A stretch of 64,000 nt of DNA from Rebecca billardiae RCC1528 (Eukaryota; Protista; Haptophyta): contig OZ251229.1 in assembly GCA_965240325.2 (NCBI GenBank), forward strand, positions 1,612,001-1,676,000. The letters run 5' to 3'. Made by a program: the position numbers and the translations under genes. Shown in pieces: positions 36,452 through 61,634 of this stretch. How positions within the stretch are numbered: position 1 is the first letter of the stretch; the number at the start of each line of letters is the position of its first letter. Under the pieces are notes generated by a model. That model searched no databases. It had not been told where the DNA came from and worked only from the letters and a program-made list of their open reading frames with translations.

Positions 36452-36938
36452 TGTAAGGAGACTTGGAACCACGGGGGCTCCCTGAGTACCCTGAGCCTGA
36501 GGAGTGACTGATGTGAGGCGGTCCGAGGGCGCGAGGCTGCGCACTGCTGGCTGGCACTCGTCTGCGCCATTCTCCGAGTCCGAGTCCGCTGGCCCGTGGC
36601 CGCGCACTCGCCGCACTCCGACTCAGTGGCATCAGTCACAGTGTCGACCTCAGGTAGCCTAGAGTGTCTCGGACTGATCATCACTACTGATTACTGTAAT
36701 TAGTGTAAAGCCGCGCGCTCGATTCTGTAGTCTTTGAATCGGCGCTGCTAAGCAGACAATAAGGTCGCGTCGACCATGAGTTGCATGACACTACGCTATA
36801 AACAATGCAGTGTCGATCATGCATGGCACCGCAGGTCCCAGTAGAAGTACTCAGACTGTGACATTCTCAACGCTGTAGTGCGCGGGCTGCGCACGCTCAT
36901 TCTCAAGTCTGTCTGGACGACTCTGGTTCAACGAACGC

Positions 36939-37556: not shown

Positions 37557-37673
37557 GATGACTGCGAGACGTGGGATCGACGGCACGCGTCGCTGTGATC
37601 AGCGGGTGGCTCGGATCACGCAGGGAAAGCGCGCGGTCGCGGGACGGTCACGGGCGGGCCGCGATGCTTGCAC

Positions 37674-37824
37674 CTTTGGTTTGGCCGACGACGGAGATCG
37701 GCGGTTGAAAGCGCGCGCGTTATTAAAAACGCAATTATGGGGGCGGTCAGATTTTGGGTCAGCAAATTAACATCTGCTAAGTCTCAACGCCCGCCCGTCA
37801 TCGTGTCGACCAACCGCTTGCAAG
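37674..37824. promoter_or_regulatory. Putative bidirectional promoter of the Lhcf pair
   Basis: AT-rich patch (TTATTAAAAA, AAATTAA) between two divergent genes, bounded by AG|GTGC splice donors on both strands. Confidence 0.55.
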
Positions 37825-37939
37825 GTGCGCATCGCCGCCCGTGACCGCCCCACGACGCGCGCGCGTGACTGGCCGCCTGCGCCGCCGCGCTGACCGCCGT
37901 GACGCCCCAACGCGCGTCTCCCCGTGCTCCGCAGTCGCC

Positions 37940-38557
37940 ATGTTCGCCCAGATCCTCGTGTCCGCCCTCGCCTTCAACGGCCCGGCCATGCGCGCGCCGA
38001 CGGCGTCGCGCGCGGCGGTGTCGATGGGCTTCGAGTCGGAGCTCGGCGCGCAGCCACCCCTCGGCTTCATCGACCCGCTCAACCTCCTCGACGGCGCGGA
38101 CCAGGAGCGCTTCGACCGCCTCCGCTTCGTCGAGATCAAGCACGGCCGCATCTGCATGCTCGCCGTGCTGGGCCACGTCGTGACGTCGGCCGGCATCCGC
38201 CTCCCGGGCGAGCTCGCGTACGGCCTGCCGTTCGCTGATGTGCCCAACGGCCTGGCGGCGCTCTCGGTCGTGCCGGCGGCGGGCCTCGCGCAGATCTTCG
38301 CGTTCGTTGGCTTCCTCGAGCTCGCGGTCATGAAGGACCTCGGTGACGGCGAGTTTGTCGGCGACTTCCGCAACGGCGCGCTTGACTTTGGCTGGGACTC
38401 GTTCGACGAGGAGACCAAGCTGCAGAAGCGCGCGATCGAGCTGAACAACGGCCGCGCGGCGCAGATGGGCATCCTCGCGCTGATGGTGCACGAGAAGCTT
38501 GACGGCAACCCGTACATCATCAACTCGCTCCTCGGCTCGCCGGTGCCGTTCAACTAA
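37940..38557 (+). CDS. Lhcf: Fucoxanthin-chlorophyll a/c binding light-harvesting protein (Lhcf), copy 2
   Basis: Protein identical to copy 1. Probable 5'UTR intron 37825-37934. Confidence 0.96.
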   Translation: MFAQILVSALAFNGPAMRAPTASRAAVSMGFESELGAQPPLGFIDPLNLLDGADQERFDRLRFVEIKHGRICMLAVLGHVVTSAGIRLPGELAYGLPFADVPNGLAALSVVPAAGLAQIFAFVGFLELAVMKDLGDGEFVGDFRNGALDFGWDSFDEETKLQKRAIELNNGRAAQMGILALMVHEKLDGNPYIINSLLGSPVPFN

Positions 38558-38980
38558 GCGGCTAAGCGCCCTACTAGCTAAGCTTACCGTGTCGTTACAA
38601 CTTGAAACAAGTCAAGTTACGTACGGGTGCGGCCCACTGCACAGATTATGGGCCCTGCGTCGGCAGAGTAGGCCGTTGCGTGTGATGCATATATATATAG
38701 GAATGACTACGATGGTTGCATGATCCGCCATATGTAATCAGCGCAATAACGACGCTATAGCTGCTGAACGAATATATGGTCAATATGGAAGGACTCACTC
38801 ACCGCATCACTGCCACTGGGCAACTGGCCGCGACGCAAGGAGACTGGCTCACTAAGTCACTAGTCACTGCTCGTTCGCGCGTCCCGGATAATTTATCGTC
38901 GTCATAGCAGCTAGCTCAATCACGCCGGGTCAGGGTGTCCGGTGTGTCGTGAAGCGCGTGAGTCAGACTCTGCTACAGTG

Positions 38981-44046: not shown

Positions 44047-47000
44047 CTAGACAAACTTGCGGCGGCCGAGCGGCTTGGAGACGAAGTCGACGCTCGAGTA
44101 GGCCTCCGCCCAGCCGCGCGCCTGGAAGAGCGCGCGCTGCTCCTCCTCGGGCAGCCCAGTGACGCCCACGTAGATGCGCTTGCACATCTCCTGCTGGCCA
44201 CGGCCGTCGAGGATGTCGATCTGCTTCTCGATGTGCTGCGGGCCGCCGAGCGTCTTGCCGATGTGTATAAGCAGCGACTCGAGCCGCTCGTCCGCGTAGT
44301 GCCCGCCGTCCAGCAGCAGGCGCACCGCGGCGAGTCGCAGCGCGTTCTCGCCAAACGCGTCGCCCGACTCCCCGAACGGGAACGAGCAGTAGAGCTCGAC
44401 GGCTGCGAGGGGCTCGGGCGGCGCGAGCGCGCGCGAGAGGATGTACCCGAGCTCCTCATACAGTGAGAGGTCGCGCCGTGCCGCGGGATCGAGGCTGAGC
44501 GCCTGCTCAAGCAGGGGCCGCAGCGGCGCGCGCGGCTCGCCGAGCTCGCGCGCGGCGCGCACGAGGCCCAGTCGTGCGCCGACGGAGGGCTCGTTCGCTG
44601 GGCCGGCGGTTGGCGGGTCAGCGTGCGCGCGCGCGGCGCGCGCGGCCGCGACGGCGCGCGCCAGCGCGGCTGACGTCACACTCGAGGCGGCGTCGGCGGC
44701 GGCCTCCGCCGCGGCGCCGACGGCTGCCAGGAGCAGCGCGCTGCCGCCGTCATCACTCTCAGCGCCGCCCTCGGCGCCGCCCTCGGCGCCGCCTCCCGCG
44801 CTGGCAGCGGGCGCGGCAGGGACGGAGGTCGCGGCGGCTGCCGGTGCCGCGGCGGCAGCCTCCGGGCGTGTCGCCGCGGTGCCAGCAGACGCGGGCGACG
44901 CAACGACCAGCGTGGGAGCAACGGCCGGCTCAGAGCCCGTCATGGCAGGAGTGGCGGTGCCGCCCGCCTTGGGCGTAGCCCCCGCACCCGCGGCCGTGCG
45001 CCGCGCGCCCGCAGCCGCCGTCGATGCGCCTGGCTTGGCGGCCGCCGCCGCCGCCGCGGAGGTGGCAGCCGCGCCGCGCTTGGCTACGGTGGCGCCTGCC
45101 GCGGGCGCGCGTGGCGCGGGTGCCGCGCCCGCGCCAGCCTTGGCGGCGGTGGCGGTGGCGGTGGTCTTGGGCTTGGCCGGCGCAGCCCCGGCGGCGGCGG
45201 AGGAGGAGGACGTCGGCGGCGCCTTGCGTGCGCCAGCGACCGCGGCCGCGCCGGCCGCTCCCGCCTTTGCGGCCGCGCCGTCCGGCCCGAGCTTGCCAGC
45301 TGCGGCGGCACCGGCGCGCGCGGGCGGCGCAGCGGCGCGGGCTGCGGGCCGCGCAGCACTGGCGGTGCTGGCCGCCGCGGCGTTCGTGGGCTTGGGCGCG
45401 CAAGCGGCCGGCCTCGCGCCAGCCGCTCCGGTCGGCTTCTTCGCCGCCGCGCCGCCTGCGCCCGGCTTGGCACCGGCCGCGCCAGCGCCGCCTTTTGCGC
45501 CCGGCGGCCCGGCGGGCGGCGCCGCGGCGGCTGCCCTCGCCGCGGCGGCGGCAGCCAGCTCCGCTCGCGCGGTGGGAGCGCTCGCCTCGAGCGCGCCCCG
45601 CGGCCGACCCTCCAGCTCGATCGCGCGCTCGAAGGCGGCCTTGGCCCCGCGTACCAGCGCCGTCGCGTCGTCTGACGGCTCGGCGCCCGCGGTGCCCGGC
45701 GCCGTCGGCGCCGCCGCTGCGCCCGCCGTCTGCGCTGCCGAGCCCGAGCCGAGGTCCGCGCTGAGATCTGCGAGGGCCAGCAGCGCGTCCCCGTGGAGCT
45801 CGTGGCAGCGCGCGTCGTGTGGCGCGAGTGAGACGAGCAGCCGCGTGCTGGCGAGCACGGAGCGCGCGGCGTCGCGCGCGCGCGAGCCCGCCGCACGCGC
45901 GCCACTGCCCACCACCACCATCACCACGCCCTCCTCGCCGCGCGTCGCGCCGCCGCCGCTTGGGCCGCCGGCGAGCGCCGCGCGCGCTGCCGCGCCCGCG
46001 AGCGCGTACGCGGCAGGCTCTTCGCCAGCAGCCGCGAGCGCGTGCGCCCACTCTGCGCGCAGCGCGGCGCGGTCTGCGAGCACGGCGCGCACGAGCGGCG
46101 GCGGCGGCTGCGCGAGCGCGCTGTTGCCGAGCGCGAGCAGCAGCGCCGCCGCGCACGCCTCGCCGACCGCGCACGCCGCGCACGCCTCGCGCAGCCGATC
46201 TCGCGCAATCTCGGCACGAGCCAATAGGAGCGCGGCGCGCGGCACGTCCGCGCAGAGGTGTGAGCACGTGCACGTCAGGGCGAGCGGCGCGTGCGGCGCG
46301 GGGCCGGCGTCGGGCGCAGCGGCGGACGCCGGAGCGGCTGCGCCCGCCGGCGGACCCGCGCCACGCCAGTCGTGCGCGCGGGTGGGCAGCGCGGCGGCGG
46401 CGCGCGCGAGCGCCCGAGCAAGCCTCGCCGTCACCTGCGCCACCGGCGGTTCGGCCGGCGCCTGCGCTGAGCCCTCCGCGCCGCGCGCGAGCCGCCCGGC
46501 TGCGGCGGGGAGGTCGAGTGTCTCGAGCAGCGCGATGCCGTGGTACAGGCACGCGTCTTCGTACAGCACGACGGGGCTCGCCCAGGGCTCCACACGATGG
46601 TGCACCAGGTGGGCCGGGCGAGGGCCCGTGGCGCCAGCTGAGCGAGCAGCGCCCGAGGCGGCGGCGGCAGCCCCGGCAGCGCCGCCGTCCGCGTCCGGTG
46701 CGGCTGCTGCTGCCCCGTGCGCAGAGGATCGCCATGCGGCGCGGGGCGAGAGCAGCGTGCACGCGCCCACGAGAGGCGGCAGCGCGTCCGACGCCCTGCC
46801 GAGCGCGAGCAACGCCCGGCCGTGCAGCAGCAGGACGATGGGCGCGGCACGCGCCTCGTCTGCAGCCTTCAACGCGGCCTCAGCCGCCGCCTCCGCCTCC
46901 GACGCCTGTGCGCGGCAGGCCGCCTCGTCGGCCTCGTCGGCGCCAGCGCCGGCGGCGCCGCCCGCCGTGCCCGCACCCACGCCGCCGGCGCCCCGCGCCA

Positions 47001-48036
47001 CGCCGAGCCGCTTCGACTGCCACTCGTGCAGCCTCGCCAGCTCGTCCGCCTCGGCGCCGCCGCCGCCTCCCGCGGCGAGCACCGCGCGACGCTTCAGCTC
47101 GATTGCCCGGAGCGCTTGCGCGGGGTCGGACTGCTGCGAGGGCGGCACGCCGGCGGCGTCCATGAGCGCGCGGATCTCGTCCGCCTCCATGCTCTCGGCC
47201 CCATCGCCGGCCTCCTCGCCCGCGCCCGCGCGTGACGGCTTGGCGGGCGCCGCCGCCTCGCCGAGCCCAAGCCCCACCTGTAGCCGTGCCTCGAGGGCGA
47301 GGGCGGCCGCCAGCGTGTGCGCGCCCGCTGCGGAGGGCTCCTTCTTGAGCAGCGTCTTGAGCCGCTCGCGCGCGCGGCCGAGCCACCATGCCGCCGGATC
47401 GGAGCCGGGCGGCATCGACTTGCGCTCCTGCGCGCGCTCGGGCCGCGCGGCGCGGCTCGCAGGCCATGCGGCCTCTGCGCTCAGCGCGGCCTCGAGCCGA
47501 GCCGAGAGCAGGCAGACGCGCACAAAGAGAGGCATGCCCGGCTTGAGCGGCTTCCCGCCCGGCGCGGAGACCTCCGTGCTCGTCTGTAGCGCCTCGTCCA
47601 GCTTGCCGTCGAGGGCCTGCAGCTGCGCCAGCTCGAGCTTTTGCGTCGAGGGCGAGTTGAAGCGCTTCTGGGCGGTCTCTCGCGCCTCGCGCGCGCCGTC
47701 CGCGCACGCGGCGCCAAGGCGCGAGAGCGCGAGCGCGCGGCCGGTGGCGACGCGAATGGACTTCTTCGCCACCGCCTCATCCGGAAGCGCCGGCTCGAAC
47801 GCCGCGAGCGCGCCATCCACATCGCCTGCCTCCAACAGCAGCTCACCGAGCAGAGCGCGCGCATCCGCCGCGCCCTGCGCGACGGCGCGTCGGGCGAAGG
47901 GCAGCGCGCAGGGGAAGCTGGCGACGTGGTGGAGCTCGTCCGCACGGCTCAAGCTCTCCTCGCCCGGGAGCACTCCAGAGCTGTGCACGCTCTTCTCCAG
48001 TGCGTTCGCCGCTCGCTCGGCGGCGAGCTGAGCCAT
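44047..48036 (-). CDS. Large TPR-like helical-repeat protein with Ala/Lys-rich low-complexity insert
   Basis: Uninterrupted ~1330-aa ORF with TPR-like segments (LLGELLLEAGDVDGALAAFE, PHDARCHELHGDALL, AFERAIELE). Confidence 0.7.
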   Translation of the reverse strand: MAQLAAERAANALEKSVHSSGVLPGEESLSRADELHHVASFPCALPFARRAVAQGAADARALLGELLLEAGDVDGALAAFEPALPDEAVAKKSIRVATGRALALSRLGAACADGAREARETAQKRFNSPSTQKLELAQLQALDGKLDEALQTSTEVSAPGGKPLKPGMPLFVRVCLLSARLEAALSAEAAWPASRAARPERAQERKSMPPGSDPAAWWLGRARERLKTLLKKEPSAAGAHTLAAALALEARLQVGLGLGEAAAPAKPSRAGAGEEAGDGAESMEADEIRALMDAAGVPPSQQSDPAQALRAIELKRRAVLAAGGGGGAEADELARLHEWQSKRLGVARGAGGVGAGTAGGAAGAGADEADEAACRAQASEAEAAAEAALKAADEARAAPIVLLLHGRALLALGRASDALPPLVGACTLLSPRAAWRSSAHGAAAAAPDADGGAAGAAAAASGAARSAGATGPRPAHLVHHRVEPWASPVVLYEDACLYHGIALLETLDLPAAAGRLARGAEGSAQAPAEPPVAQVTARLARALARAAAALPTRAHDWRGAGPPAGAAAPASAAAPDAGPAPHAPLALTCTCSHLCADVPRAALLLARAEIARDRLREACAACAVGEACAAALLLALGNSALAQPPPPLVRAVLADRAALRAEWAHALAAAGEEPAAYALAGAAARAALAGGPSGGGATRGEEGVVMVVVGSGARAAGSRARDAARSVLASTRLLVSLAPHDARCHELHGDALLALADLSADLGSGSAAQTAGAAAAPTAPGTAGAEPSDDATALVRGAKAAFERAIELEGRPRGALEASAPTARAELAAAAAARAAAAAPPAGPPGAKGGAGAAGAKPGAGGAAAKKPTGAAGARPAACAPKPTNAAAASTASAARPAARAAAPPARAGAAAAGKLGPDGAAAKAGAAGAAAVAGARKAPPTSSSSAAAGAAPAKPKTTATATAAKAGAGAAPAPRAPAAGATVAKRGAAATSAAAAAAAKPGASTAAAGARRTAAGAGATPKAGGTATPAMTGSEPAVAPTLVVASPASAGTAATRPEAAAAAPAAAATSVPAAPAASAGGGAEGGAEGGAESDDGGSALLLAAVGAAAEAAADAASSVTSAALARAVAAARAARAHADPPTAGPANEPSVGARLGLVRAARELGEPRAPLRPLLEQALSLDPAARRDLSLYEELGYILSRALAPPEPLAAVELYCSFPFGESGDAFGENALRLAAVRLLLDGGHYADERLESLLIHIGKTLGGPQHIEKQIDILDGRGQQEMCKRIYVGVTGLPEEEQRALFQARGWAEAYSSVDFVSKPLGRRKFV

Positions 48037-48179
48037 GCTCCCAGTGATGAAATGACGATCGATGCCCGGCCAGGCCCACCCACAGAAGGGCGGGGCCGGG
48101 GCAAGAATCACGGTGCAAACAAAAGCATGGAGTCCGCACACGAGCAAGGGCGGGCCTTGTGGGGTGGCCAGGTCAAGGG

Positions 48180-50874
48180 CGGGGAACTTACAGTTTACTA
48201 AGAATAAGAGACGCACACAGCTCAGGCAGGCGAGATTCAGACCGTCTGAATCGGCCCCCTCATCGCTCAGACCGGTCTGAGCGAGGGCCCGATTCAGACG
48301 GTTTTTGGGCCCGCCCCACTGGCGAGCGCGCTGCGGGAGTGCGGGACGCACCTCGCACTGGGGGCGGTGCACACTGCACTCACGGCGCGCCGCGATGTGT
48401 TCGGGCGGTGGATGGGGCTGAATCGGCCGAGAGTGACGGTGCGATCGGCCGCGATGCGTCTGCCATCACCCAGTGAGCTCGTGCGGTGCCAGCTCGCCCT
48501 TCGCTTCGTCGCCACTCGCAATCGCACCAGTCGCGCGCGTCCATGGCTTGCCTTTCGCGCGCTGTGTTCTCGCGGAGTGTGTGCTTGGCAGCAGGGTGCT
48601 CGTGGCCGGTGGTTGCCGTCGCAGAGGATCGGAATGTGCGCAGCTACGCTACATCCCAGACACCATGTGCCCGTCCTCGTCGAGCGTTGGAGAGACACGC
48701 GTGTCGCGCATGCGCTCGCGGAAGCAGGCTGCACAGCGGCGCGCGGGCGTGGCTGCGCGCGCATGACAAGGTGCACCACACAGCTGCCCCCGCCATGAGC
48801 ACCAGCTGTGCACGCACCTCTTCCGTGTTGTCTGCTCCGCCAGGCCGCCACGGTGCGGAGACTGCGCGCGTCAGACACCGACAGTCAGCGGCCACAGCTG
48901 ACACGGTTGCGTGCGGCAGCAATCTGGCTCACAGCTTTCTCTCGGAAGCGATGGCCACGTCGACCGGCTGGCACCGTCGGTGCGCTCAGCGATGGCGCGA
49001 CATCGCTGCCACCTACCGCTGGGGACTCCTCGCGCAATAAAGCCCTCGTTCCTCGTCGGAAGGGCGGGCGTGATCGCTCCACGCATCGCTCACGCTGCTC
49101 GCCTTGCTCACGGCCACGCTTGCGCTCACGCTCGCGACATCGGCCGCGCCACCGCCCGTGGTCGTACTCTCGGTCACCACCGCCGTGGTGGTTTCGGGTG
49201 CTTACGTTTGACCTGGTCTACCGTGCGCCGGCAGCCGCCAGGCGAGTGCATTGGCCTCCGGCCGGCAGGGCGGCCGTTCTCACTCTGCGAGTGCGCGCGC
49301 TGGCGCGAACTGCTTCGGTACGCATGCCCGGCGTCCTGATTCAGACGGCAAGTGCATCTGCATCCGCCCGACACGCCGCCCACTGAGCGCCAGGCGCCGG
49401 ACCGATGGTGCTATTGCTGCAGCTGGGCGGATCAGGTGCCGAGCTTCTGACGCTGTGCACGTTGCGAAACCCATCGCCATTGCCGCACCCGTCCGCATGC
49501 GCATGGGACGGCGCTGCTTGAGGCGCTGCCATCAGGCGCGCGGCGGGCGGCCTCCGCCCTCGGCACCGCCGCCGAAGTGCGAGACGCGGAAGCGGAGGTC
49601 TCGCCCACGTACAGCGCTGCTCTGCGCGCCGCGCGGGACACGCCCACCACGCCCAGTTCTTCGGCAAACTCCCGAGGCTCCGAGCGCCGACGCTGTATGT
49701 GACGAGTTGAGCCCTGCTGCACAGCTTCTGACAGGCTAAGTCTCGGACTCTGCTGCAAGCTGCATTTAATAAAAACAAATGGCGGTGGGATAAAAAGTTA
49801 AAAGTGGCTGCAGCAATTCCCATTCCACAAGTCATCTCCCCTCATAACGCTAGTACGGCTGCGTTGAGGCTACCAACACGAGCAACAGCAGTTGCTGTCT
49901 CAGCCGCAACATCTGCAGCAGCTGCTGGTCCTTGGAGCAGCACTCCCGCGACAGCGCGCCCCCGAAGGAGCTGCGTGCGCGGCTGCTCGGACGACTGTGC
50001 CTATTGCTGCCGCTCAGCCGAGCATCGTGCCACAGCTGCCGGAGGTGCAAGGGCTGCGAGTGCTGTTGGCGAGTGCGGGTGTACCAGTGGCAGCGATTGG
50101 GGTGACTGCCACCGGCGCTGCTGCTGTTTCATCAATCGAAGCTGCAGCAACGGCTGCATCAGCTGCTGCACGCCATGGCATGTGCCAGTGACCTGTGTGC
50201 GCCGTGGCCGCTGACTGTCGGTGTCTCACGCGCGCAGTCTCCGCACCGTGGCGGCCTGGCGGAGCAGACAACACGGAAGAGGTGCGTACACAGCTGGTGC
50301 TCATGGCGGGGGCAGCTGTGTGGTGCACCTTGTCATGCGCGCGCAGCCACGCCCGCGCGCCGCTGTGCACTACCTGCTTCCGCGAGCGCATGCGCGACAC
50401 GCGTGTCTCTCCAACGCTCGACGAGGACGGGCACATGGTGTCTGGGATGTAGCGTAGCTGCGCACATTCCGATCCTCCGCGACGGCCACCACCGGCCACG
50501 AGCACCCTGCTGCCAAGCACACACTGCGCGAGAACACAGCGCGCGAACGGAAAGCCATGGACGCGCGCGACCGTGGTGCGATTGCGAGTGGCGACGAAGC
50601 GAAGGGCGAGCTGGCACCGCACGAGCTCACTGGGTGATGGCAGACGCATCGCGGCCGATCGCACCGTCACTCTCGGCCGATTCAGCCCCATCCACCGCCC
50701 GAACACATCGCGGCGCGCCGTGAGTGCAGTGTGCACCGCCCCCAATGCGAGGTGCGTCCCGCAGCGCGCTCGCCAGTGGGGCGGGCCCAAAAACATCTGC
50801 TGAATCGGGCCCTCGCTCAGACCGGTCTGAGCGAGGGGGCCGATTCAGATGACGGTCTGACTGTAAGTTCCCCG
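48180..50874. mobile_element. Foldback element A (2.7 kb), ~700-bp inverted arms, 9-bp TSD (Mutator-like by structure)
   Basis: Ends CGGGGAACTTACAG / CTGTAAGTTCCCCG. Arms ~48180-48908 and ~50191-50874. TSD GGTCAAGGG (48171-48179, 50875-50883). Confidence 0.88.
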
Positions 50875-50884
50875 GGTCAAGGGC

Positions 50885-53431
50885 CAGTGGTGCTAATCTG
50901 CCCTGAGGGCACCGTGCCCTCTGGAGGGCACCGTGCCCTCGTGGGGCTCTGAGGGCACGGTGCCCTCGCGGGACGCAGCCTCGCACTGCGCGGCGCGCCG
51001 CGATGAGTTCGAGTGGTGGACGGGGGTGCATCGGGTGCTAGTGACGGTACGATGGGCCGCGACGAGCCCACCATCACCCAGTGATCTCGTGCGGTGCCAG
51101 CTCGCCCTCCTCCTCGTCGTCACTCGCACTGGCACCACGTCGCGCGCGCGCGCATGGCTTGCCTTGCGCGCGCTGTGTTCACGCGCAGTCTGCTTGGCAG
51201 CAGGGCGACCGTGGCTGGTGGTTGCGGTCGCGGATGATTGGAGTGTGTGCAGCTGCGCTACATCCGCACGCGACCCGCCCGTCCTCGTCGAGCGCTGGAG
51301 AGACACGCGTGTCGCGCATGCACTCGAGTGGAAGCAGGAGAGCGGCACGCGAGCTTGGCTGCGCGCGCACGACAAGGTGCGCCAACACACAGCTCCTCCC
51401 GCCATAAGCACCAGCTACGCACACACCCCTTCCGCGCTGCCTGACCTGCGAGGCCGCCGCGGTGCGGACACTGCGTGAGACACCCACGGTCAGCGGCCAC
51501 GGCTGACACTGGTCAACAGCTCATGCAGCCGTTGCTGCAGCTTCGATTGCAACAGCAGCAGCGCTGGTGGCAGTCAACCCCATCGCTGTCGCTGGCGTAA
51601 CCACCCTCGGCGCCATAGCGCCCACGGCACCAGCAGCCCTTGCACGTCCAGCAGCTGCGGCACGTCGCTCGGCTGAGTGGCGGCAATACGGACTAGGTTG
51701 TCGTCCGAGCAGCCGCGCGGGCAGCTCCATGACCTTGGGGCGCCCTGTCGCTGCATGCCGCTCCAAGCGTCTGCTGTAGCTGCTGCGGCTGAGACAGCAA
51801 CTGCTATTGCTCGCGATGGCAGCTTCACCGCAGCTGTACCATCAGCATCATCAGTTGTGACTTACTTAGAACGCGATGTGGCAATAAATGGGATTTCCGC
51901 CGTTTTTTTCGCTCGATGGATTTGAATAATAAATGAAAATCCCGCTGTGACCTTGGAGACTTGGAGACTTGATGTGTGCACACACTTGACGTGGCGGCTG
52001 TGCTGCAGGGCTCACACGGGACGTCGGCGCATGGAGCCTGGGGAGCTCTTATCCGCAGAGGCGTGGTAGGCGTGCTCCACCCCGCACGCAGCCCAGCGCT
52101 GTAGCAGCCGCTTCCGCGTACTCGCACTTTGGCGGTGGTGCCAAGGCCGCGCGCCGCTCGCCTGACGGCATCGCCGCAGCAGCGCGGTCCCACGCGCATG
52201 CGGACGGGCGCGGCAATGGCGGTGGGGTTCGCAACGTGCAAGGCGTCAGCGGCTCGGCACCGGGTCCACCCGGCTGCAGCAGTAGCACCGTCGGCGCTCG
52301 CGGCGCATGCGGCGTCAGGCGCTCACCAAGCGGCGTGTCGGGCGGGTGCGGATGCAGCTGCCGGAACCAGGGCGCCGGGTATGCACGCGGCTGCAGCTCG
52401 CCCCAGCGCGCACTCGCAGGCAGTGAAGTCGGCCGCCCTGCCGGCCGGATTCGTAGGCGCTCGCTTGGCGGCTGCCGGCGCGCGACAAGCCAGAGCACGA
52501 GTAAAGCATCCGCACCGCCACGGCGGTGGTGACAGAGAGCACGACCACGGGCGGTGGTGCCGCCGATGCAGCGAGCGCGAGCTCGAGCGCGGCCGTGAAC
52601 GGTGCAAGCAGCGTCAGCGGCGCGCGGAGCGATCAAGCCCGCCGTTCCAAGAGGAACAAGGGCGGCATTGCGGGAGGGTAGGGGCACCGGCAGACAGCAG
52701 CGATGTCGCGCCATCGCTGATCGGACTGACATGGCTAGCCGGTCGATGTGGCCATTGCTCGCGAGAGTATGCTATGAGCCAGATTGCTGTGCAGCACGCG
52801 ACCGTGTCAGCCGTGGCCGCTGACCGTGGGTGTCTCACGCAGTGTCCGCACCGCGGCGGCCTCGCAGGTCAGGCAGCGCGGAAGGGGTGTGTGCGTAGCT
52901 GGTGCTCATGGCGGGAGGAGCTGTGTGTTGGAGCACCTTGTCGTGCGCGCGCAGCCAAGCTCGCGTGCCGCTCTCCTGCTTCTACTCGAGTGCATGCGCG
53001 ACACGCGTGTCTCTCCAGCGCTCGACGAGGACGGGCGGGTCGCGTGCGGATGTAGCGTAGCTGCACACACTCCAATCATCCGCGACCGCAACCACCAGCC
53101 ACGGTCGCCCTGCTGCCAAGCAGACTGCGCGTGAACACAGCGCGCGCAAGGCAAGCCATGCGCGCGCGCGCGCGACGTGGTGCCAGTGCGAGTGACGACG
53201 AGGAGGAGGGCGAGCTGGCACCGCACGAGATCACTGGGTGATGGTGGGCTCGTCGCGGCCCATCGTACCGTCACTAGCACCCGATGCACCCCCGTCCACC
53301 ACTCGAACTCATCGCGGCGCGCCGCGCAGTGCGAGGCTGCGTCCCGCGAGGGCACCGTGCCCTCAGAGCCCCACGAGGGCACGGTGCCCTCCAAGAGGGC
53401 ACGGTGCCCTCAGGGCAGATTAGCACCACTG
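50885..53431. mobile_element. Foldback element B (2.55 kb), ~630-bp inverted arms, diverged relative of A in opposite orientation
   Basis: Ends CAGTGGTGCTAATCT / AGATTAGCACCACTG. TSD GTCAAGGGC (50876-50884, 53432-53440); 7-bp or 11-bp readings are also possible. Arms and core align with A. Confidence 0.88.
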
Positions 53432-53461
53432 GTCAAGGGCCTTGGCCAGACGCTCGCCAGA

Positions 53462-54571
53462 CAAGGGTAGTAAGGGTGAGCAACTCCGCTGGCGACAGCC
53501 GCGAAGGTCGGCAGCCCTCTGTTTGCCGCGAGCGGAGCGGAGCGAGTGCTATCAGCGGCGGAGGGCGCTGAGGCCGCGCACGGCGTGAGGCGCGGCGTCG
53601 GCCGAGTCGGTCCGCGGAGGATGCGCGGCGCTCGGCCCGCTGCGCAGCGGCAGTGCGCCTCACTTTGCCCCGAGCGCCGTCCGCCGCGTCGCCTCCTTCC
53701 CGCCTTGGAGCAGCACGCATGTGCGCGCCGCCACCTTGAAGGCGGCACGGGCTTGCTCAGACGACCGCGCGCGCGTGGCGCGCGACTTGGTCGGCTGCGC
53801 GCGCGCGCCGCCGCGGTGCAAGGTAGCGCCGCCGCATGCGCGCGCCGTGCCAGCGCGAGAGCGTGTGCGCGGACCTGAGTGCGACCTCACACACATGTCG
53901 AATGCTGCTTGGCATCCGACTTGCGGACTGACGGGAAGCTGGAAAAGACAGCGGCGTGAGTGTTGGTACCATCGATGCGGAGCCTTAGCGTCCACTTGCA
54001 TTCGTGCTGAGAAGGAATAGACAAGACTAGGCCTTCGTCCTGGGTATCCAATGTCACTCAACACCTCGCTGATCGACCCGACGAGTGCCAGCGTGAGGCA
54101 CAGCAAATCATTCGTGAGAGCAAGCAGACAAGCGAGCACTACGCTCATGAGATGGCCGTGAGCAAAGGCTCGCGCGGGCACGGCGCGCGCATGTGGTGGC
54201 GCTACCTTGCACCGCGGCGGCGCGCGCGCGCAGCCGACCAAGTCGCGCGCCACGCGCGCGCGGTCGTCTGAGCAAGCCCGTGCCGCCTTCAAGGTGGCGG
54301 CGCGCACATGCGTGCTGCTCCAAGGCGGGAAGGAGGCGACGCGGAGGACGGCGCTCGGGGCAAAGTGAGGCGCACTGCCGCTGCGCAGCGGGCCGAGCGC
54401 CGCGCATCCTCCGCGGACCGACTCGGCCGACGCCGCGCCTCACGCCGTGCGCGGCCTCAGCGCCCTCCGCCGCTGATAGCACTCGCTCCGCTCCGCTCGC
54501 GGCAAACAGAGGGCTGCCGACCTTCGCGGCTGTCGCCAGCGGAGTTGCTCACCCTTACTACTGTACCCTTG
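53462..54571. mobile_element. Foldback element C (1.1 kb), CAAGGG...CCCTTG ends, ~395-bp arms, 7-bp TSD
   Basis: TSD CGCCAGA (53455-53461, 54572-54578). Arms ~53462-53859 and ~54169-54571. Confidence 0.88.
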
Positions 54572-54585
54572 CGCCAGACACGGTC

Positions 54586-55483
54586 ATTGACACTGGCCCA
54601 CAGGGGGGGGTTCCGAATTGGTCCCCCGACCTCGAGCTCGATGGCTGCCGCACGCGCGTGCCCAGCGTGCCTCGCGCGTGTACGTGCACGGTAGGGCGTC
54701 CCGACAGCGGCGGGGTGGCGTAGATGGTCGCATGGGAGGTGCATCCGTGTGTCGGAGACGTCTCGGCGCCTCGGTGGCGTGCCCACACCTCTCCTTGTCG
54801 CCGCTTGCCTGCTGCGTGCTCGGCCAGCCGTTTGGAGTGCACGCCTGCACGTGCACGGCCAGTGTCGGGCGGATCGAGCCGTAGCGAGTGTGCTTGCGGG
54901 TACTCCCACCCGATGCGGCTCTCTGCCGCCGTCGCAAGCCCTCGCGCGTGTCCTGGAACCTGCCGAATCTAGTCGGGCATGCGCCCAACATGCTCGCGAA
55001 CATTGCCCAGGAATCGCATCAGAAATGCGCTATTTGAAAATAAAACTGGACAGCATGTGGTGTACCACCATGACAACACTGAACACGTCGTGGGTTGGAG
55101 TGCACGGCTTGGGATTGATGCACGAGAGCTACTACGACGGCGGCAGAGAGCCGCATCGGGTGGGAGTACCCGCAAGCACACTCGCTACGGCTCGATCCGC
55201 CCGACACTGGCCGTGCACGTGCAGGCGTGCACTCCAAACGGCTGGCCGAGCACGCAGCAGGCAAGCGGCGACAAGGAGAGGTGTGGGCACGCCACCGAGG
55301 CGCCGAGACGTCTCCGACACACGGATGCACCTCCCATGCGACCATCTACGCCACCCCGCCGCTGTCGGGACGCCCTACCGTGCACGTACACGCGCGAGGC
55401 ACGCTGGGCACGCACGTGCGGCAGCCATCGAGCTCGAGGTCGGGGGACCAATTCGGAACCCCCCCCTGTGGGCCAGTGTCAAT
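54586..55483. mobile_element. Foldback element D (0.9 kb), ~350-bp arms, short ambiguous TSD (AT or ATT)
   Basis: Ends ATTGACACTGGCCCACAG / CTGTGGGCCAGTGTCAAT. Arms 54586-54934 and 55135-55483. Confidence 0.8.
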
Positions 55484-56114
55484 TGTGCCAGAGTGAGGGG
55501 ACCTTGCCCCTCACAAAGATGCCCCATGTCGGCGTGGCTGGCACGCAACTGCCAGCCACGCCGATCACAATGTGGCACGTGCTTGGTGAGTGCTCGACGA
55601 TGCAGCCGCGCTATTCGGCCGAACCGACGGTGAAATTGTGGCAATTGATCTCCCGTGCGCCGCACTCTCGTCCAGAGAGATTGGAGGGTGCCTGAGGCCT
55701 GAGCTGTGTGCGAGCCTTGTTTTGAGTAAACGTAACTGAGCCCTGCACGATTGCATGCCGAACGTCCCGCCGGCTACTCATGTGAGGCCCGAGTGCTGCA
55801 GGATGACTGCGTAGCTAGTGATCTCGCCTGCCTGAGCTGTGTGCGTCTCTTATTCTTAGCTAGTAAACTGTACCTGCTGATGATGATAGTTCGGTTTTAA
55901 AAACCGAATACTATCTTCCGGGCCGACGCTCTGGACACTACGCGGATGCGTCTCGTCGGACCTGCCGGCTGACCCGAGTCTGAGACGACTGTGCTGGCGC
56001 CCCGCGACTTTATTCGGGCCGTGCACTTCCCCTGCAGCTGGGAGTTTGATGGCGGACCGTATATGAACACATACGTAATGGTGCCGACGAAGCCGCCGGG
56101 GCACGGAGTCCCAA

Positions 56115-56305
56115 CTCATTCTATATGATATAGCAACACAGGTAGGACGGCGCAGGTCTCCTGATTCGTCGTCGGCCGTGCCCGATCGTCGATAAGTCGG
56201 CGTTGGTGGCAGAGCATATATAGCCTGCACGGTGCACCGCGCGATCGAAATTCGAATGGCTTCGGAGCGCGGCCTTGAGCTGCTGGGAGCGCGATCCACC
56301 TGCGC
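56115..56305 (-). repeat. ~190-bp dispersed repeat, inverted homologue of ~61405-61575
   Basis: Shared blocks GCAGGTGGATCGCGCTC, TGCTCTGCCACCAACGCCGACTT and CGACGAATCAGGAGACC. Confidence 0.85.
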
Positions 56306-56515
56306 TGCGCGACTCGCATTGACCTGCTGTGCCCCGAGCGAGGGCGAGGGTGCTAATTATTGATAAGTGATCTGACTCCGCCCCACGTTCGTGGGCTCCA
56401 TCCACCATTCCACCTGCGAGGCTGCGACCGGAATCATCGCCGCCAGCATCGGAGTCATCATCAGCACGACCAGTATTATAAAAGAAACTGGGGCTTGTTA
56501 TGTCAATATGTGTCT

Positions 56516-56635
<120 letters not shown>

Positions 56636-57426
56636 ATCTGGCAGCCTAGAAACTGAGATTAGCGATTGGCTGGTTTGCTATACACATAGTCACATTAATC
56701 ATTGACTCAAAACTGACCGGGACTACGTCGCGGCTCGTGCCGTGCGGTCCGAGGCGCGTGCCCGTGGGACGCAGCACGTGGCCCGACGGCGACTACGAAT
56801 TCGTACAGGCCAGGTCCACTTCTCCTGTAACTGAGTCCTGGCCAACGGTGCACAACCGGTATGCATGCAACATCATGGCATATTTGCTCGTCTAATGAAA
56901 AGGTGGCCCAATGTTTTCCTTCGGCCTCGCCGGCAGGGCCTATAGACTCGGACTCCGAGCGGGGGGCTCTGCCGACCTGTCGGGCCTGCGGGGCGGCCGG
57001 GACGGACCTAGGCCTAGCGGCAGTAGCGCTAGAAAGTGAAGTCGAATTGAGACTCCGTAGGCGACGCTCGGGCCGTCCCGAACGGCTACTACTAAGAAAC
57101 CGAGACTAGGCACTAGCCGTGATGGGCGGATCTCTGCTGACTTCCGAGTATCGCCTGACGCTGATTATCGCGGTCTAATCTGTAATAATAATTATAATAA
57201 TTAGTCGATATGACCGCGTTCCGCGGTCCTTTTTCCGTAGAACGAACGTAGTTCAGGGCCCGCGGTGGCGGTGCACCCTCCGTCGCAGTCGTCTATTGAC
57301 AGACCAGTTGCATATGCCCGTACAACTAGACTCCATCAGCGGCGCGCCGCGGCGCCGCCGCCCGCCGCGCCGGGCGGGCCCATTGCAGCCGCCGGCGCGG
57401 CGCCGATTGTGTACAGGCGGATGCGA

Positions 57427-57729
57427 CGAGGCGTGATCGACGCATGAGCGCGACTCCACGTGCACACCAGGCCACGCGGAGCTGACAGCCAGGGAGCACG
57501 GTGCGGGGCCGCGGATTCGTTCGGGCCGCTGCTGCTGACCGCTGTCCCCGGGGTCACCCCCCGCGCCGGCAGCGCCCGGGAGTAGGGCTGGAGGAGTAGG
57601 GTCCGAGTAGGGTTCGACCAGCGCCTGCGCGACGGCCGACAGGCGGGCGCGAGGCGTGATCGACGCATGAGCGCAACTCTACGTGCACGCCAGGCCACGC
57701 GGAGCTGACAGTCCGAGGGAGCACGGTGC
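57427..57729. repeat. ~80-bp imperfect direct repeat (57427-57505 and 57650-57729)
   Basis: GAGGCGTGATCGACGCATGAGCGC...CCAGGCCACGCGGAGCTGACAG...GGGAGCACGGTGC occurs twice. Confidence 0.85.
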
Positions 57730-58982
57730 CGAGGTGCGAGGGCACCGGTGATCCGGTTCGCGCACTCGCCGCGCGTGCACGGGCAGCTGACACACCTCGA
57801 TCAGGCTCGGCACGCGTTGCAGAGGCACGGCCAGCTCTGGGGACGTCACGCACCACCGTCGCCCGCGCAGCTCGTCCTCCTCGTAGAGTACCGTTCAGTT
57901 CCGAGGCGTAGCCCTCGCTCAGAGTCGACCGACGATGGACTCGGATCGTCGGCGCGCCTGCTCTCTCTCAATCAAGAAGAGTTCTGGGAGACCCCGGAAA
58001 GGCATGGCAAGGGCGGCGCGTGGTGAAGTCGAAGGCTCAGAGATCGATCAGTCCGGCATCAGGCGCCGCTGCCCCCGAGCTTGCGAGAGCCCGAACACAG
58101 GGCGGCGGCTGCGGCGCCGGCTCGCGGACACGCCGGGGCCGCGCAAGGCCGCGCCGAGGCATCGACAGGGCGGCAGGGGCGGCGGGGGCGCGCGGAGTGA
58201 GCGGGGGCACGACGAACGCGATGTCGACGGCAGTCGGGACCCGCCGCAGCCGCGCGCTCCAGGCGCCATTCGCCGCGCGCACCTGCCCATCGCCGTCCTC
58301 ACCCGAGTCGGTCGCTCGTGAGCCTCGTGCCCGTGGCTCGCCTCCAAACGCGGGCCGCCTCTGGTGGGCCGCCGCCCGGGGCCACGCGCGCGCCCAACCA
58401 AGTCCGTTCGCGTCAGATAGTATTGAGATTCGCCGAGGTTGGCCCATCGGCTACTGACCCTTGACTCGTCGGCTCCTGATACAGACACGGCGCGATTGAA
58501 TAGTTGATTCAACTGATTCAAGGGACGTACATGGTCACATCGGTTCGCGGCAATCTCTATATCTAGATACGTCATCGCTCCTTGGACCTTGCTGCAATCT
58601 CATTGGCCGGAAAAATCGCTTGTAACGGTTCGTTACGTTAGGGATCCTAAAGGGCGTGAAGTTTTTTGGACGGGCGTCACTCCACGCTTTACTATGAACT
58701 TGCCGTGGGCGCGACCTTTTTCGACGCTAATGCACCTGTAAGGGAGTCTCAAAATTCGAAACTCGGTCTCCTCCAGCCATGAAAATCGTCCCCCGTCCCT
58801 TTTTTCTTGATCAAAGATCTTTTTGAAACGTTGTTCGGGCCCGCTGGTGCGGGCTCCACGCTGCGCGCTCCGCCCTGCACCGCGGGCCATAATTCGATAA
58901 CTACGACCGCGTTAATAGCTATCGTCTGCTCATAACTACGACTAAAAAGTAGTTAAAATCTGATCAATCGAATGGACTGTAT

Positions 58983-59066
58983 ACACACACACACACACAC
59001 ACACACACATTACACTCACTCACACACACACACACACACACACGAGACACACATCAGATATTGTAG

Positions 59067-59099
<33 letters not shown>
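58983..59099. repeat. Compound (AC)n and (TA)n microsatellites
   Basis: Seen directly. Confidence 0.9.
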
Positions 59100-59102
<3 letters not shown>

Positions 59103-59559
59103 CGACGTGGTATGCAACGGGCAGGCGTCAAAGTCAGCAAGCTGTAGCAGCAGATCGAGTGTCAGCTGAGACAAACACCAGGATCAGCGCTCCTCGCCGT
59201 CGTCCCCCCCCCTCGTAGTCGCCCATCACTCCATCGCCGAGCGGAAGCTCGACGCACCGTCTGGCGTCGACGCGCGCGCGCCACCGCGGTGGTCGCGGTG
59301 CCACGCGTCGTCAGCCGTCGTCTCGAAGTAGTCGTCGTATGCAGCGCCCGCGCGGGCGCGTGCCCCCGCGGGCGCACGTGCGCCATGCGCGCGCTGGGCG
59401 ATGACTATGTCTGTCTATGAGCAATGAGCATCGTCTTGGCCTGGCCACATATGAAATAATAATAAGTATTATTATCATGCTTTTAGTGAATCTGAAATAG
59501 TTATCATTATAATAATAATAATAAATGAACTAATTAATTAAAACGGATCGGTCTAGTTC

Positions 59560-61634
59560 TAGGTGGGCCCACTGGCCACTGTGGGATTATAGTGACGCAG
59601 AGCGCGAGCTCATAGCGCGATGTTTACTTTCGTCTCGAGCTGGATTCCAGCCCCAGGAGATGGCCCCTGGCCTGCCTGGTTAAAAAAACCAGTGGTACAT
59701 GCTGTAAATATAGGGAGTAACGGTGGTCCTGTTTACTTATTGGAAATGGCCTGTGACCAATGTAACGGCCATGTAACGGGCGTCTTAAACGTGATATATA
59801 GGGTCGATAGACGTCACTTTGATATAGCACTTTGATGAGCTGATCATAGGTCTTCAGCAGCATGCACACCCATTGTCACATATACGGCGTATATGGGCAC
59901 TGTGAGAATACGGGATAACGGCCGTTACACCCGTGCGTTACATATACACCGCCATGCTGATCAGCATGGCTGCCATAGTATTTCAGACTGTTTCAGACTG
60001 CTCTCGTAGCAGCCGTACGGCGTGCATGTGACACCTAAGAATTTTTCCAACCCTTCTACCCTCGAAGGATGGGTCTTAAGGAGCCGTGGGCAAAGATTGA
60101 GCCGCACCGAGTCGCGGCGCCAGCCCGCCCGCCGTGGTCAAGGCAAGCAGGAGTGGTGCACGCGGCGCCGGGCCCATCCAGCAGCCCGCAGCGTAAACAC
60201 GGCGGACAAGGTTCGTCGAGAGCTCATCTGTGGCGTTCAAGGCAGGCACTGCTATGCATCGAACGCCTATTCTCATGCCCCGACCTAACCGTTGCTCTAC
60301 ACTGCGACCAAGCTGTGTCCGAGCTGTCCTCAGCTTGACCGTCCTTTGCCTAACTGTGCGCAACGGCCGCTTCGTCGCAGCGCCGAGCTGGCTCGCCGTG
60401 GTGCGCGCGCGCGCGTAGCGATGTGCACTCATCACCGCTTCCTGCGTGGCAGCAGGGCGAGACATGGCTCGCAGGTAAGCTGATACGCCTGCTGACCGTG
60501 CACCGGCGTCGGCGGCGCCACCAACGTCCTCGGGCAGGCTCACGAAGGGCTCAAATCACTGGTGAACGCATCAACTGTACTGTCCGCAGCGAGCACGGCG
60601 CACAGCGGATGACCAAGCAGAGGCGGGGCGACTGCTGTGCGGCCGCGCGGGGGGAGTAGCTGGGCTCTTGAGGTACGCGTAGAGCCACGACAGGGCTCAA
60701 CAAGCGCATCAGCTGCAATCTACCCGGCTTGACGCGCAGCCCGACCTCGTGCAATCGTGTGGCTCGAGGCCCTCCAAGGGGCTCGTAGCTTCCAAACACC
60801 TGAGGTGCGTCGGCACTGAGAGTTGAGTCGAGGCCGGGGAGGTAACAGACGGCACACGCATCCACTTTGACCGCTGTTTGACCATCAGATCCTTCCCCAA
60901 GTGCCCACGATCATGTGAATAGCCACAGCGTTCGGTCACACCGCGCAGACTTCCGGGGACCTGACCGACGAGGCGGGTCTCCGCAGGGCCACAGAAGTAG
61001 CTGGGCCTTGCCAGGATACCATGCATATGCTGTCCGAGTAACGCTCCGGAGTGTCCGAGTTGATTCGAGTGCGTCCCAAGCTCGCGTTGTGCACGCATTA
61101 CAATCCTCAAAGCTGTTCCGGTGTTTGAACGCGCGACTGTCGGCGAGAGATGGCGGACCGGGAAGATGACCCAGGGATGAACCGTTCGTATGGCTCGTTT
61201 CAGAGGGCTACGCAGTATGCCACGGGCGTGCGGCGCAGCGTGCCTCGCATGGTAGGCGGGCAAGCGCGGCGGACAACGCGCTGACGACGCGCACAGGTCG
61301 ATCCCGGTCATCGTTTTCGCGAGCGACCGGCTTCCCGGACCGGGAGTTTGGCGGCCTGGAAAAAAGGGACTTCAGCGCGAGAAAAAGAGCACGGCTGCAG
61401 CCGCGCAGCGCAGGTGGATCGCGCTCCAGCAGCTCAAGGCCGCGCTCAAGCTTTACGATCGCGGTGCAGGCTATGCTCTGCCACCAACGCCGACTTCGTG
61501 TCGACGATCGGGCACTGCCGCCGACGAATCAGGAGACCCGCGTCGTCCTACCTGTGTCGTTAAATCATAGAATGGGTCCGAAAAAGCCAGAGAGATTGTG
61601 TTTTCATTTTTATAAATGGCTGTGGGCCCACCTA
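59560..61634. mobile_element. Non-autonomous TIR DNA transposon (TAGG...CCTA family, copy 2), 7-bp TSD
   Basis: 13-bp perfect TIR TAGGTGGGCCCAC (59560-59572) / GTGGGCCCACCTA (61622-61634). TSD CTAGTTC (59553-59559, 61635-61641). Confidence 0.87.

Follow-up and report, generated by a model that had tools for sequence, protein, structure and literature searches.

A stack of four foldback transposons upstream of a TPR-like gene looks like an ordinary, repeatedly used insertion hotspot

Four transposons with long inverted arms, here called A to D, lie side by side upstream of a gene in a 64-kb stretch of DNA (the window). This raises the question of whether the elements were brought together by a targeting system that has not been described, or whether a hotspot of a known kind was simply used again and again. 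The first-pass annotation had described four adjacent elements, and both the coordinates and the geometry of this arrangement match exactly, with neighbouring elements separated by 10 bp (A and B), 30 bp (B and C), and 14 bp (C and D) (Table 1). The description of the elements as not nested held for A to D themselves, but not for everything within them, as the left tip of A contains a foreign unit of 43 nt. The insertion site, hereafter the pad, does lie upstream of the TPR-like gene, whose ATG is 144 bp from A. The codon-position GC content of this gene (0.82/0.66/0.87) is of the coding type and its translation looks protein-like; Atlas features assign TPR clusters to it with a very high score, and the search for relatives gave no Pfam match and no sequence homologue. 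On the other side of the ATG, the DNA from 48.04 to ~61.8 kb is without coding periodicity and consists mostly of repeats, including a 5.4-kb element at ~56.13-61.56 kb.

All four elements are non-autonomous, non-coding DNA transposons with long inverted repeats. Eight of the longest internal frames, taken from across the four elements, matched no Pfam family at E<=0.01, and a search for RNA families in 47.9-56.4 kb returned sub-threshold chance matches only. Removal of the elements together with their duplications rebuilds a pre-insertion site of ~40 bp, and the earlier reconstruction of this site is correct. The target sequence is found three times in the stretch (at 48171, 50875, and 53432), and A and B used one target in registers shifted by 1 bp. 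Tandem duplication or recombination as the origin of the triple target was ruled out, since the A and B sequences diverge by 20% and their tips are unrelated. When the whole assembly was searched for the empty A/B site with a 31-nt pattern (<=3 mismatches), no match was found. A, B, and C each have their own duplication and D has its own ends, indicating separate events within tens of bases. B, C, and D all lie within 40 bp adjoining A, and ~560 bp of further unique, apparently free DNA follows directly to the right of D; by a rough estimate, this clustering is beyond chance (p ~0.001-0.01).

Table 1 Features of the insertion pad and its surroundings, with positions in the window
Feature	Position	Strand	Description
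Neighbouring gene	44050-48036	-	1329-codon open frame, ATG at 48036; N-terminal part TPR-like
Footprint-like palindrome CAAGGGCGGGCCTTG	48145-48159		CAAGGG..CCTTG motif
A, left target duplication	48171-48179		9 bp, GGTCAAGGG; right copy 50875-50883
Element A	48180-50874		2695-bp non-autonomous long-inverted-repeat transposon; tip CGGGGAACTTACAG; 9-bp duplication
44-nt unit, first copy	48194-48236	+	43 nt; 13 nt inside A left tip; missing from canonical A copies
A/B shared spacer	50875-50884		A right duplication (50875-50883) and B left duplication (50876-50884)
Element B	50885-53431		2547-bp relative of A; 9-bp duplication
B, right duplication	53432-53440		9 bp, GTCAAGGGC; left copy 50876-50884
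Footprint-like palindrome CAAGGGCCTTG	53434-53444		Overlapped by A and B targets
C, left duplication	53455-53461		7 bp, CGCCAGA; right copy 54572-54578
Element C	53462-54571		1110-bp non-autonomous foldback; tips CAAGGGTAGTAAGGG..CCCTTG; 7-bp duplication
Element D	54586-55483		898-bp non-autonomous foldback; ends ATTGACACTGGCCC..GTGTCAAT
44-nt unit, second copy	55821-55872	-	Variant with 4-nt insert, ~340 bp right of D

A is the oldest of the four elements. Its arms (~670 nt) are 94.9% identical, its subterminal region has TCAGACCGGTCTGA-type palindromes, and at least 15 siblings show identities of 89-98% (best sibling 98.0%). A perfect 9-bp duplication was present in all ten A-family copies compared, and comparison of these duplications revealed no sequence consensus; sequence preference alone therefore fails to explain the 9-10 bases that A and B have in common. 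B is young, with arms of ~630 nt that are 98.7% identical and at least six siblings at 96-99.8% identity (best sibling 99.8%). Its 9-bp duplication is clean in two of four family members, the pad copy and L009, and degraded in L008 and L010. The two had been taken for unrelated families, a view that does not survive comparison of their bodies: B positions 99-2448 align to A positions 196-2547 at ~80% identity, the middle part lying in opposite orientation, and the 9-bp signature is common to both. The tips of B, with CAGTGGTGCTAATC and three GAGGGCACCGTGCCCTC palindromes, are unrelated to those of A.

Both A and B are Mutator-like, as seen from their 9-bp duplications, which fall in the 8-11 bp range of such elements; arms of 630-670 nt and repeated subterminal palindrome motifs are further features of this kind. 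The genome has two loci with the PF10551 (MULE) domain, of which L051 has a 9-bp duplication and L052 has TCAGCCCGGGCTGA repeats in its ends. It encodes Mutator-type transposases in 9-bp-duplication elements with repeated subterminal palindromes, an architecture as in A and B. The tips at these two loci, where we sought an autonomous partner, match neither A nor B. Two other readings of the A and B sequences were rejected. An introner-like interpretation of the A tips (ACAG left, CTGTAAGT right) places the donor- and acceptor-like ends on the wrong sides for self-splicing, and the similarity that would make the A/B target a relic of an E-type tip stops at the 8 shared nucleotides, GTCAAGGG.

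C is young and abundant. Its arms (393 nt) are 99.0% identical, its family comprises 292 candidate arms with siblings at 98.4-99.8% identity, and copies with exact CAAGGG-type tips number ~115 when C is pooled with the E family. A clean 7-bp duplication was found in 11 of 14 siblings and also at the pad copy. The target consensus of the family is palindromic, G-Y-Y-N-R-R-C, with a pyrimidine at position 3 in 13/13 cases and a purine at position 5 in 12/13, and the pad duplication CGCCAGA is a poor fit to it. Identical 7-mer targets recur at independent C loci, namely GCTCAAC at L012 and L022 and GCCTAAC at L019 and L020. From the 7-bp duplication, in a superfamily where 7-8 bp are usual, and the palindromic target preference, C is Galileo/P-like. 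The genome contains one P-type RNase H frame (PF21787, 1322 aa, contig 21) with a paralogue of 67% DNA identity on contig 38. As a candidate autonomous partner of C, this frame is without CAAGGG ends within 0.4-0.55 kb, and neither CAAGGG tips nor inverted repeats turned up in the 4.9 kb examined.

D is likewise young. Its arms (349 nt) are 99.7% identical; the family has 82 candidate arms, and identities of 94.6-99.7% were seen for the full-length siblings, of which ten in 13 exceed 98.3%, the best reaching 99.7%. All copies start with ATTGACAC and end with GTGTCAAT in unrelated flanks, and the AT could belong to either the element or the duplication. ATT and AAT are not direct repeats, as the 2-bp TA or 3-bp TWA duplications of Tc1/mariner, PIF/Harbinger, or ISL2EU-type elements would be, and D is without a demonstrable duplication. 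Among the duplication classes given in the first-pass annotation (9, 9, 7, and 2-3 bp), the first three are backed by siblings, but the 2-3 bp assigned to D is unconfirmed. The pad elements come from three or four families and display no fewer than three integration signatures, one of 9 bp, one of 7 bp, and one with neither length, in agreement with the minimum of three transposases deduced earlier. The accompanying suggestion that unrelated superfamilies converged on hairpins stands in that foldback architecture recurs across families of the genome, but not for A and B, which are related.

Apart from the four elements, the pad carries two short palindromes built on a CAAGGG..CCTTG motif (Table 1). 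Both are probably excision footprints of C-type CAAGGG..CCCTTG elements; on excision, P-superfamily elements would leave behind some nucleotides from either end. The two are the only instances of the motif in the 64-kb window, compared to 0.10 expected, and CAAGGG(0-6 nt)CCTTG gave 659 strand matches genome-wide against 43 for the control (~15-fold), a count that includes the exact tip-to-tip form. In the rebuilt site, CAAGGGCCTTG is flanked by GCCAGGT and GCCAGAC, which are identical at 5/7 positions, and GCCAGAC fits the C-family consensus. The best 7-bp flank repeat at the three footprint sites that were checked was 5/7, and matching flanks are absent at the other pad footprint. With the four elements and the two palindromes read as C-type footprints, the pad would have received at least six transposon visits within ~75 bp.

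The 43-nt unit in the left tip of A belongs to a dispersed 44-nt sequence, with 739 copies genome-wide at <=2 mismatches versus 0 in the control. Flanking duplications were seen for one of 13 copies.

It is fairly likely that the nest was built up one cut-and-paste insertion at a time, by elements arriving independently at a single, persistent hotspot of fine scale, which would originally have lain ~110-190 bp from the ATG of the TPR-like gene, on its upstream side. Taken with the directly observed elements, duplications, copy numbers, sibling-relative ages, and footprint motif with its genome-wide enrichment, the history would have run as follows, in an order that is likely but not certain. 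One or two CAAGGG..CCCTTG elements (7-bp, Galileo/P-like) would have entered at targets fitting G-Y-Y-N-R-R-C and later excised, leaving the CAAGG(G)..CCTTG footprints. A, a Mutator-like non-autonomous foldback, would then have entered GGTCAAGGG, overlapping one footprint, and much later its tip-swapped relative B would have entered the right-side target copy of A, 1 bp out of register. C would then have inserted 14 bp past this target, with D following another 7 bp along, and the 43-nt unit would have entered the left tip of A. Since a preferred target is duplicated with each insertion, one would expect it to be used again.

Mutator-type and P-type transposases favour open or protein-bound stretches at the 5' edges of genes. 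A sequence-encoded stretch of this kind at the 5' edge of the neighbouring gene may have been what attracted the elements, and the target preference of each family, together with the removal by selection of insertions that hit functional DNA nearby, would make the clustering tighter. Against this idea of an open site, the insertion of A had put 2.7 kb between the pad and the ATG, so that none of the three later elements arrived close to the start codon. For the idea to hold, the pad's own sequence would have to keep the site accessible.

Alternatively, resident foldbacks might draw insertions to within tens of bases of their tips, so that the stack grew outward from A; this is possible, if unlikely. 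Such attraction could be mediated by transposase bound to subterminal repeats in a resident relative; stalled replication, or the structure of the DNA where a long palindrome begins, could also be the cause. The distances to the neighbouring tip are indeed short, but inconsistent (1 nt for B to A, 30 nt for C to B, and 14 nt for D to C), and the 43-nt unit also sits just inside a tip. Elsewhere in the genome, C copies lie 18 nt (L014) and 66 nt (L013) inside the tips of relatives and one (L022) exactly one duplication from a relative, and three loci have a satellite-bearing element next to an A/B tip, lying 21 nt inside, 54 nt inside, and ~20 nt outside it. Eighteen of 32 repeat-bearing flanks have a repeat within 60 bp of the element end, but the sample favoured canonical-length copies, so that tip and interior insertions are not fairly comparable. 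The genome-wide spacing statistics are based on ~35 sampled copies and on pattern counts. Arm identity increases from left to right (A 94.9% to D 99.7%), as outward growth would have it, although the differences among B, C, and D amount to 1-8 mismatches only.

Several observations speak against growth from the tips. The footprint under the A/B duplications shows that the site was used before B, and probably before A, so the base of a resident hairpin is not needed either, contrary to the earlier suggestion that the cruciform base of a resident element might have served as target. A tip-to-tip pair within 30 bp occurred once among ~115 CAAGGG-type copies. The co-occurrence of families that the first-pass annotation had put forward for checking did not materialise: among ~75 listed sibling loci, none adjoins a copy of another of the four families. 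More doubtful again is the wider notion that foldback ends, or the DNA structure or stalled replication that they bring about, guide the integration of unrelated superfamilies and thereby seed stacks and nests. A preference for element ends, if true, would account for the stacking and nesting of many foldback families in this genome.

That elements inserted at random and merely survived in a dispensable, old, transposon-rich gap of a compact genome is distinctly improbable. The non-coding-like, mostly repetitive stretch beside the gene would suit this idea, and repeats next to repeats are common at the sampled loci, but under random insertion one would expect neither the crowding of three young insertions and two footprints into ~75 bp despite ~560 bp of free DNA, nor a target that A and B share to within 1 bp, nor a measurable target consensus in the C family. 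Although long palindromes are hard to assemble, an assembly artefact, or a composite moved or duplicated as one unit, is very unlikely because all four families are multicopy with solitary copies elsewhere (full-length siblings of each element lie at unique loci), and the junctions follow the logic of duplication exactly, including the triple target, the assembly comprises 41 contigs for 72 Mb, and among the matches listed neither the block nor any pair of its elements recurred.

Overall, the locus looks like an ordinary, repeatedly used insertion site rather than a new targeting system. The single hotspot proposed at the outset is borne out, and more strongly than claimed given the two footprint-like palindromes in the pad. 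The undescribed targeting system is not demonstrated, since siblings of the four families are not co-located and the known behaviour of Mu, P, and foldback elements is enough. For Mu, which creates 9-bp duplications, there are 324 hotspots in genes and a preference for transcription start sites, and the choice of site depends more on context than on sequence (PMC2774946). Promoters and origins of replication are the favoured sites of P elements (PMC7776569). In Galileo the inverted repeats are long and the 7-bp target is palindromic, and its sites turn into hotspots for secondary insertion (PMC2775673).

Among known systems, Galileo of Drosophila (P superfamily) is like C in its very long inverted repeats, non-autonomous copies of ~1-1.5 kb, 7-bp duplication, palindromic G.....C target, and middle segment in either orientation. 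The Galileo target is GTAGTAC, whereas that of the C family is G-Y-Y-N-R-R-C, and C differs further in its CAAGGG tips and its haptophyte-type algal host. In Drosophila, the accumulation of Galileo is ascribed to low recombination around inversion breakpoints, a situation of which the pad shows no sign. A and B have counterparts in Drosophila FB and in Tm1, a Mutator/Foldback element of root-knot nematodes; common to them are composite inverted repeats of the foldback kind in which internal motifs recur, consensus-free 9-bp duplications, mostly non-coding copies, and nesting with 7-bp-duplication elements (PMC3169594). Unlike in these elements, most of the arm sequence in A and B is unique, with a few subterminal palindromes instead of short-tandem-repeat arrays, and a same-tip autonomous partner was not found at the two Mutator-type loci of the genome.

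Nested and adjacent MITE insertions in plants were reportedly described by Jiang and Wessler in 2001. Like the pad, plant MITEs involve short non-autonomous elements preferentially within or beside other elements, but they differ in being mostly truly nested, driven by short AT-rich targets inside the host elements. The hotspots of maize Mu and Drosophila P resemble the pad in their repeated independent insertions into one short stretch at the 5' edge of a gene, and in these genic hotspots the context of open chromatin outweighs sequence (PMC2774946, PMC7776569). Such hotspots are known as separate alleles in mutant collections, whereas the pad holds at least three families fixed side by side in one genome, and three of its insertions came after the site had moved 2.7 kb from the gene. 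The locus illustrates known hotspot behaviour and reveals no new system; as a clean natural record of base-exact target reuse, of scars probably left by excision, and of related elements whose tips have been exchanged, it is useful for studying the target choice of DNA transposons in a little-studied algal lineage.

The geometry of the four foldback elements in the first-pass annotation proved exact to the single base, with spacers of 10, 30 and 14 bp, and deletion of A-D together with one copy of each duplication recovered the 40-bp site (the pad) that it had reconstructed. The window (contig 12, bases 1612001-1676000, of a 72-Mb assembly in 41 contigs) has a G+C content of 55-79% in 2-kb steps and contains (TG)n microsatellites. 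The ATG at 48036, previously assigned to a TPR-like gene, indeed starts a minus-strand frame of 1329 codons whose codon-position G+C is of coding type and which has a protein-like translation and TPR-like language-model features; neither a Pfam match nor a homologue was found for this frame. Most of the remaining gene-free interval is occupied by a 5.4-kb element (~56130-61560), which has diverged inverted ends (..ACACAGGTAGGACG..), includes a (TG)n tract (~56520-56640) and recurs in pieces beside D copies at two other loci (L032, L035). Two more isolated foldback elements are present at 25262-26377 (arms ~400 nt) and 36936-38560 (631 nt), neither with an adjoining repeat.

Positions of the foldback elements, the dispersed 44-nt unit and the footprint-like palindromes (window coordinates, or handles of other loci in the genome)
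Feature	Position	Description	Basis
A	48180-50874	arms ~670 nt, 94.9% identity	inverted-repeat and BLAST analysis
B	50885-53431	arms ~630 nt, 98.7% identity	inverted-repeat and BLAST analysis
C	53462-54571	arms 393 nt, 99.0% identity	inverted-repeat and BLAST analysis
D	54586-55483	arms 349 nt, 99.7% identity	inverted-repeat and BLAST analysis
44-nt unit	48194-48236 (+)		
44-nt unit	55821-55872 (-)		
44-nt unit	L001-L005, L017, L027, L030, L034, L041, L047, L053		
Footprint-like palindrome	48145-48159	CAAGGG(0-6 nt)CCTTG pattern	
Footprint-like palindrome	53434-53444	CAAGGG(0-6 nt)CCTTG pattern	

A-D are real transposons, and the four-element block is not one unit. Genome-wide, we found at least 15 paired copies of the A family (~2.6 kb, 89-98% identity, A arm as query), at least six of the B family (96-99.8% identity), 292 candidate arms of the C family (siblings 98.4-99.8% identical) and 82 of the D family (full-length siblings 94.6-99.7% identical, 10 of 13 above 98.3%). 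Exact CAAGGG-type tips, as in C and related families, number 114+115 versus 2+2 for the control. Among the coordinates listed, siblings of different families never lay close together. No Pfam domain was detected in eight of the longest internal frames of A-D, indicating that all four elements are non-autonomous. Miniature A-family derivatives, barely more than two tips, exist at two loci (L044:1492-1563, ~72 bp; L046:1487-1676, ~190 bp).

The duplication lengths of 9 bp (A, B) and 7 bp (C) were upheld. Perfect 9-bp repeats without a consensus flank 10 of 10 A-family copies; for B, the 9-bp duplication is seen at the window copy and one other locus (L009) and is degraded at two more. The 7-bp duplication accompanies 11 of 14 C-family siblings, with a palindromic target preference (G-Y-Y-N-R-R-C) and the same 7-mer targets seen again at independent loci. 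The "2-3 bp" given for D was not verifiable: every copy begins ATTGACAC and finishes GTGTCAAT, with unrelated flanks, and its duplication is clearly neither 7 nor 9 bp.

The elements had been described as unrelated, but A and B are relatives. Positions 196-2547 of A and 99-2448 of B match at ~80%, with the middle segment inverted, whereas the outermost 100-140 nt show no relationship and contain different sets of repeated palindromes. Two families with a common 2.3-kb body and the same 9-bp duplication length have thus exchanged termini. At this site the duplications, GGTCAAGGG for A and GTCAAGGGC for B, are one target shifted by one base, which is thus now present three times (48171, 50875, 53432). 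As A is more diverged than B, both between arms and among siblings, B most likely inserted into the target copy at the right side of A. Two loci in the genome carry a Mutator domain (PF10551): a 3.8-kb element (L051:2866-6631), which is bounded by 128-nt inverted repeats and the 9-bp duplication CCGCAGGCA and contains a frame of 1037 aa, and an older element of ~8.4 kb (L052:373-8782), whose ends of repeated TCAGCCCGGGCTGA palindromes share this architecture with A (TCAGACCGGTCTGA). The tips of A and B are absent from both loci, so that "Mutator-like" is supported by duplication length and architecture rather than by a matched transposase.

The left tip of A is interrupted by 43 nt (48194-48236) belonging to a dispersed 44-nt unit. 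With these bases plus one T as reference, 739 genomic copies were found at ≤2 mismatches (control, 0), and all of the first 100 listed are exact; Rfam gave no match. The unit is always preceded by (C)TTACAG or TACAG, on which side the DNA is often AT-rich with many ACTACT/GTAGTA words. Flanks are otherwise unrelated, and a direct repeat (12 nt, L027) borders only 1 of 13 copies. Possible identities include a very small retroposed RNA, a signal cassette and the terminal part of an as yet unrecognised element. One copy lies ~190 nt beyond the stop of the single P-type RNase H frame in the genome (1322 codons, PF21787 N-terminal domain; L053/L054, contig 21, 1532845-1536810, minus strand), and the 150 nt directly after that stop are unusually AT-rich. 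Neither CAAGGG ends nor inverted repeats occur in the 4.9 kb examined around this frame, which may represent either the only autonomous P-like element or a gene that has been domesticated.

The pad itself appears to record earlier visits. The rebuilt site holds CAAGGGCCTTG, and CAAGGGCGGGCCTTG is found 15 bp further left; besides these two, the 64 kb contain no match to CAAGGG(0-6 nt)CCTTG (0.10 matches expected). Across the genome the pattern occurs 330+329 times (659) versus 21+22 (43) for the reversed control, in forms that include two tips directly joined, or with three more letters of a related family's tip, as expected of excision footprints of CAAGGG..CCCTTG elements. The 659 motifs are probably hundreds of such footprints, and would then be a rare record of cut-and-paste excision across a genome. 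On either side of the second pad motif stand GCCAGGT and GCCAGAC (5/7 identical), of which GCCAGAC agrees with the C-family target consensus. Both pad motifs are likely to be footprints, which would mean at least six visits within ~75 bp. If so, the site had already been hit before B landed, and probably before A, as B's duplication spans letters of both footprint halves.

Close stacking also occurs elsewhere. In 35 sampled sibling copies, another repeat was present in 32 of 70 1.5-kb flanks, and in 18 of these 32 it was no more than 60 bp from the end of the element; the sample is skewed to canonical-length copies, and element tips and interiors are not comparable in it. C copies lie 18 nt (L014) and 66 nt (L013) within the tips of relatives. 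At one locus (L022:1501-3802; contig 19, ~1634205-1636506) a C copy stands tip to tip with a related CAAGGGAGTC-type element; the spacer is exactly one 7-bp GCTCAAC, which recurs after the second element, while the expected third copy, left of C, is degenerate. By exact pattern, this is the only place in the genome with two CAAGGG-type tips ≤30 bp apart. A satellite-bearing element (tip ~GAAGAGTCACTAC, CTCCGCYGGCGGAG palindromes, ~210-bp tandem repeats) abuts A/B tips at three independent loci (L039:4022-5521, L041:5128-7028, L045:4069-5562), 21 and 54 nt inside the tip and ~20 nt outside one.

How, then, did the pile-up arise? A stretch at the 5' edge of the gene that stays accessible would draw insertions, and the target preferences of the individual families, as well as selection, would add to this effect. 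Together these would explain the pile-up without the undescribed targeting system proposed in the first-pass annotation. By a rough count based on several thousand foldback copies in gene-proximal DNA, chance predicts ~0.02-1 four-element stacks per genome, a number that would be higher if promoters are unequal, so a single stack is not extraordinary. The assembly contains no empty-site allele. The main weakness of the accessible-site explanation is that B, C and D arrived after A had shifted the pad 2.7 kb from the gene; moreover, they took 40 bp of ~600 bp of free DNA (p ~0.001-0.01, a rough estimate). This late, crowded arrival requires either that the pad is kept attractive by its own sequence or that the ends of resident elements draw new insertions, the latter being rather unlikely in our judgement.

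Known systems offer parallels to an accessible site. P elements insert preferentially at promoters and replication origins (PMC7776569), and Galileo sites turn into hotspots for secondary insertions (PMC2775673). C resembles Galileo in its long inverted repeats and 7-bp palindromic G.....C target (PMC2775673); by this analogy it is Galileo-like in behaviour and a candidate member of the P superfamily. For A and B, the nearest described parallel is Tm1 of root-knot nematodes (PMC3169594).
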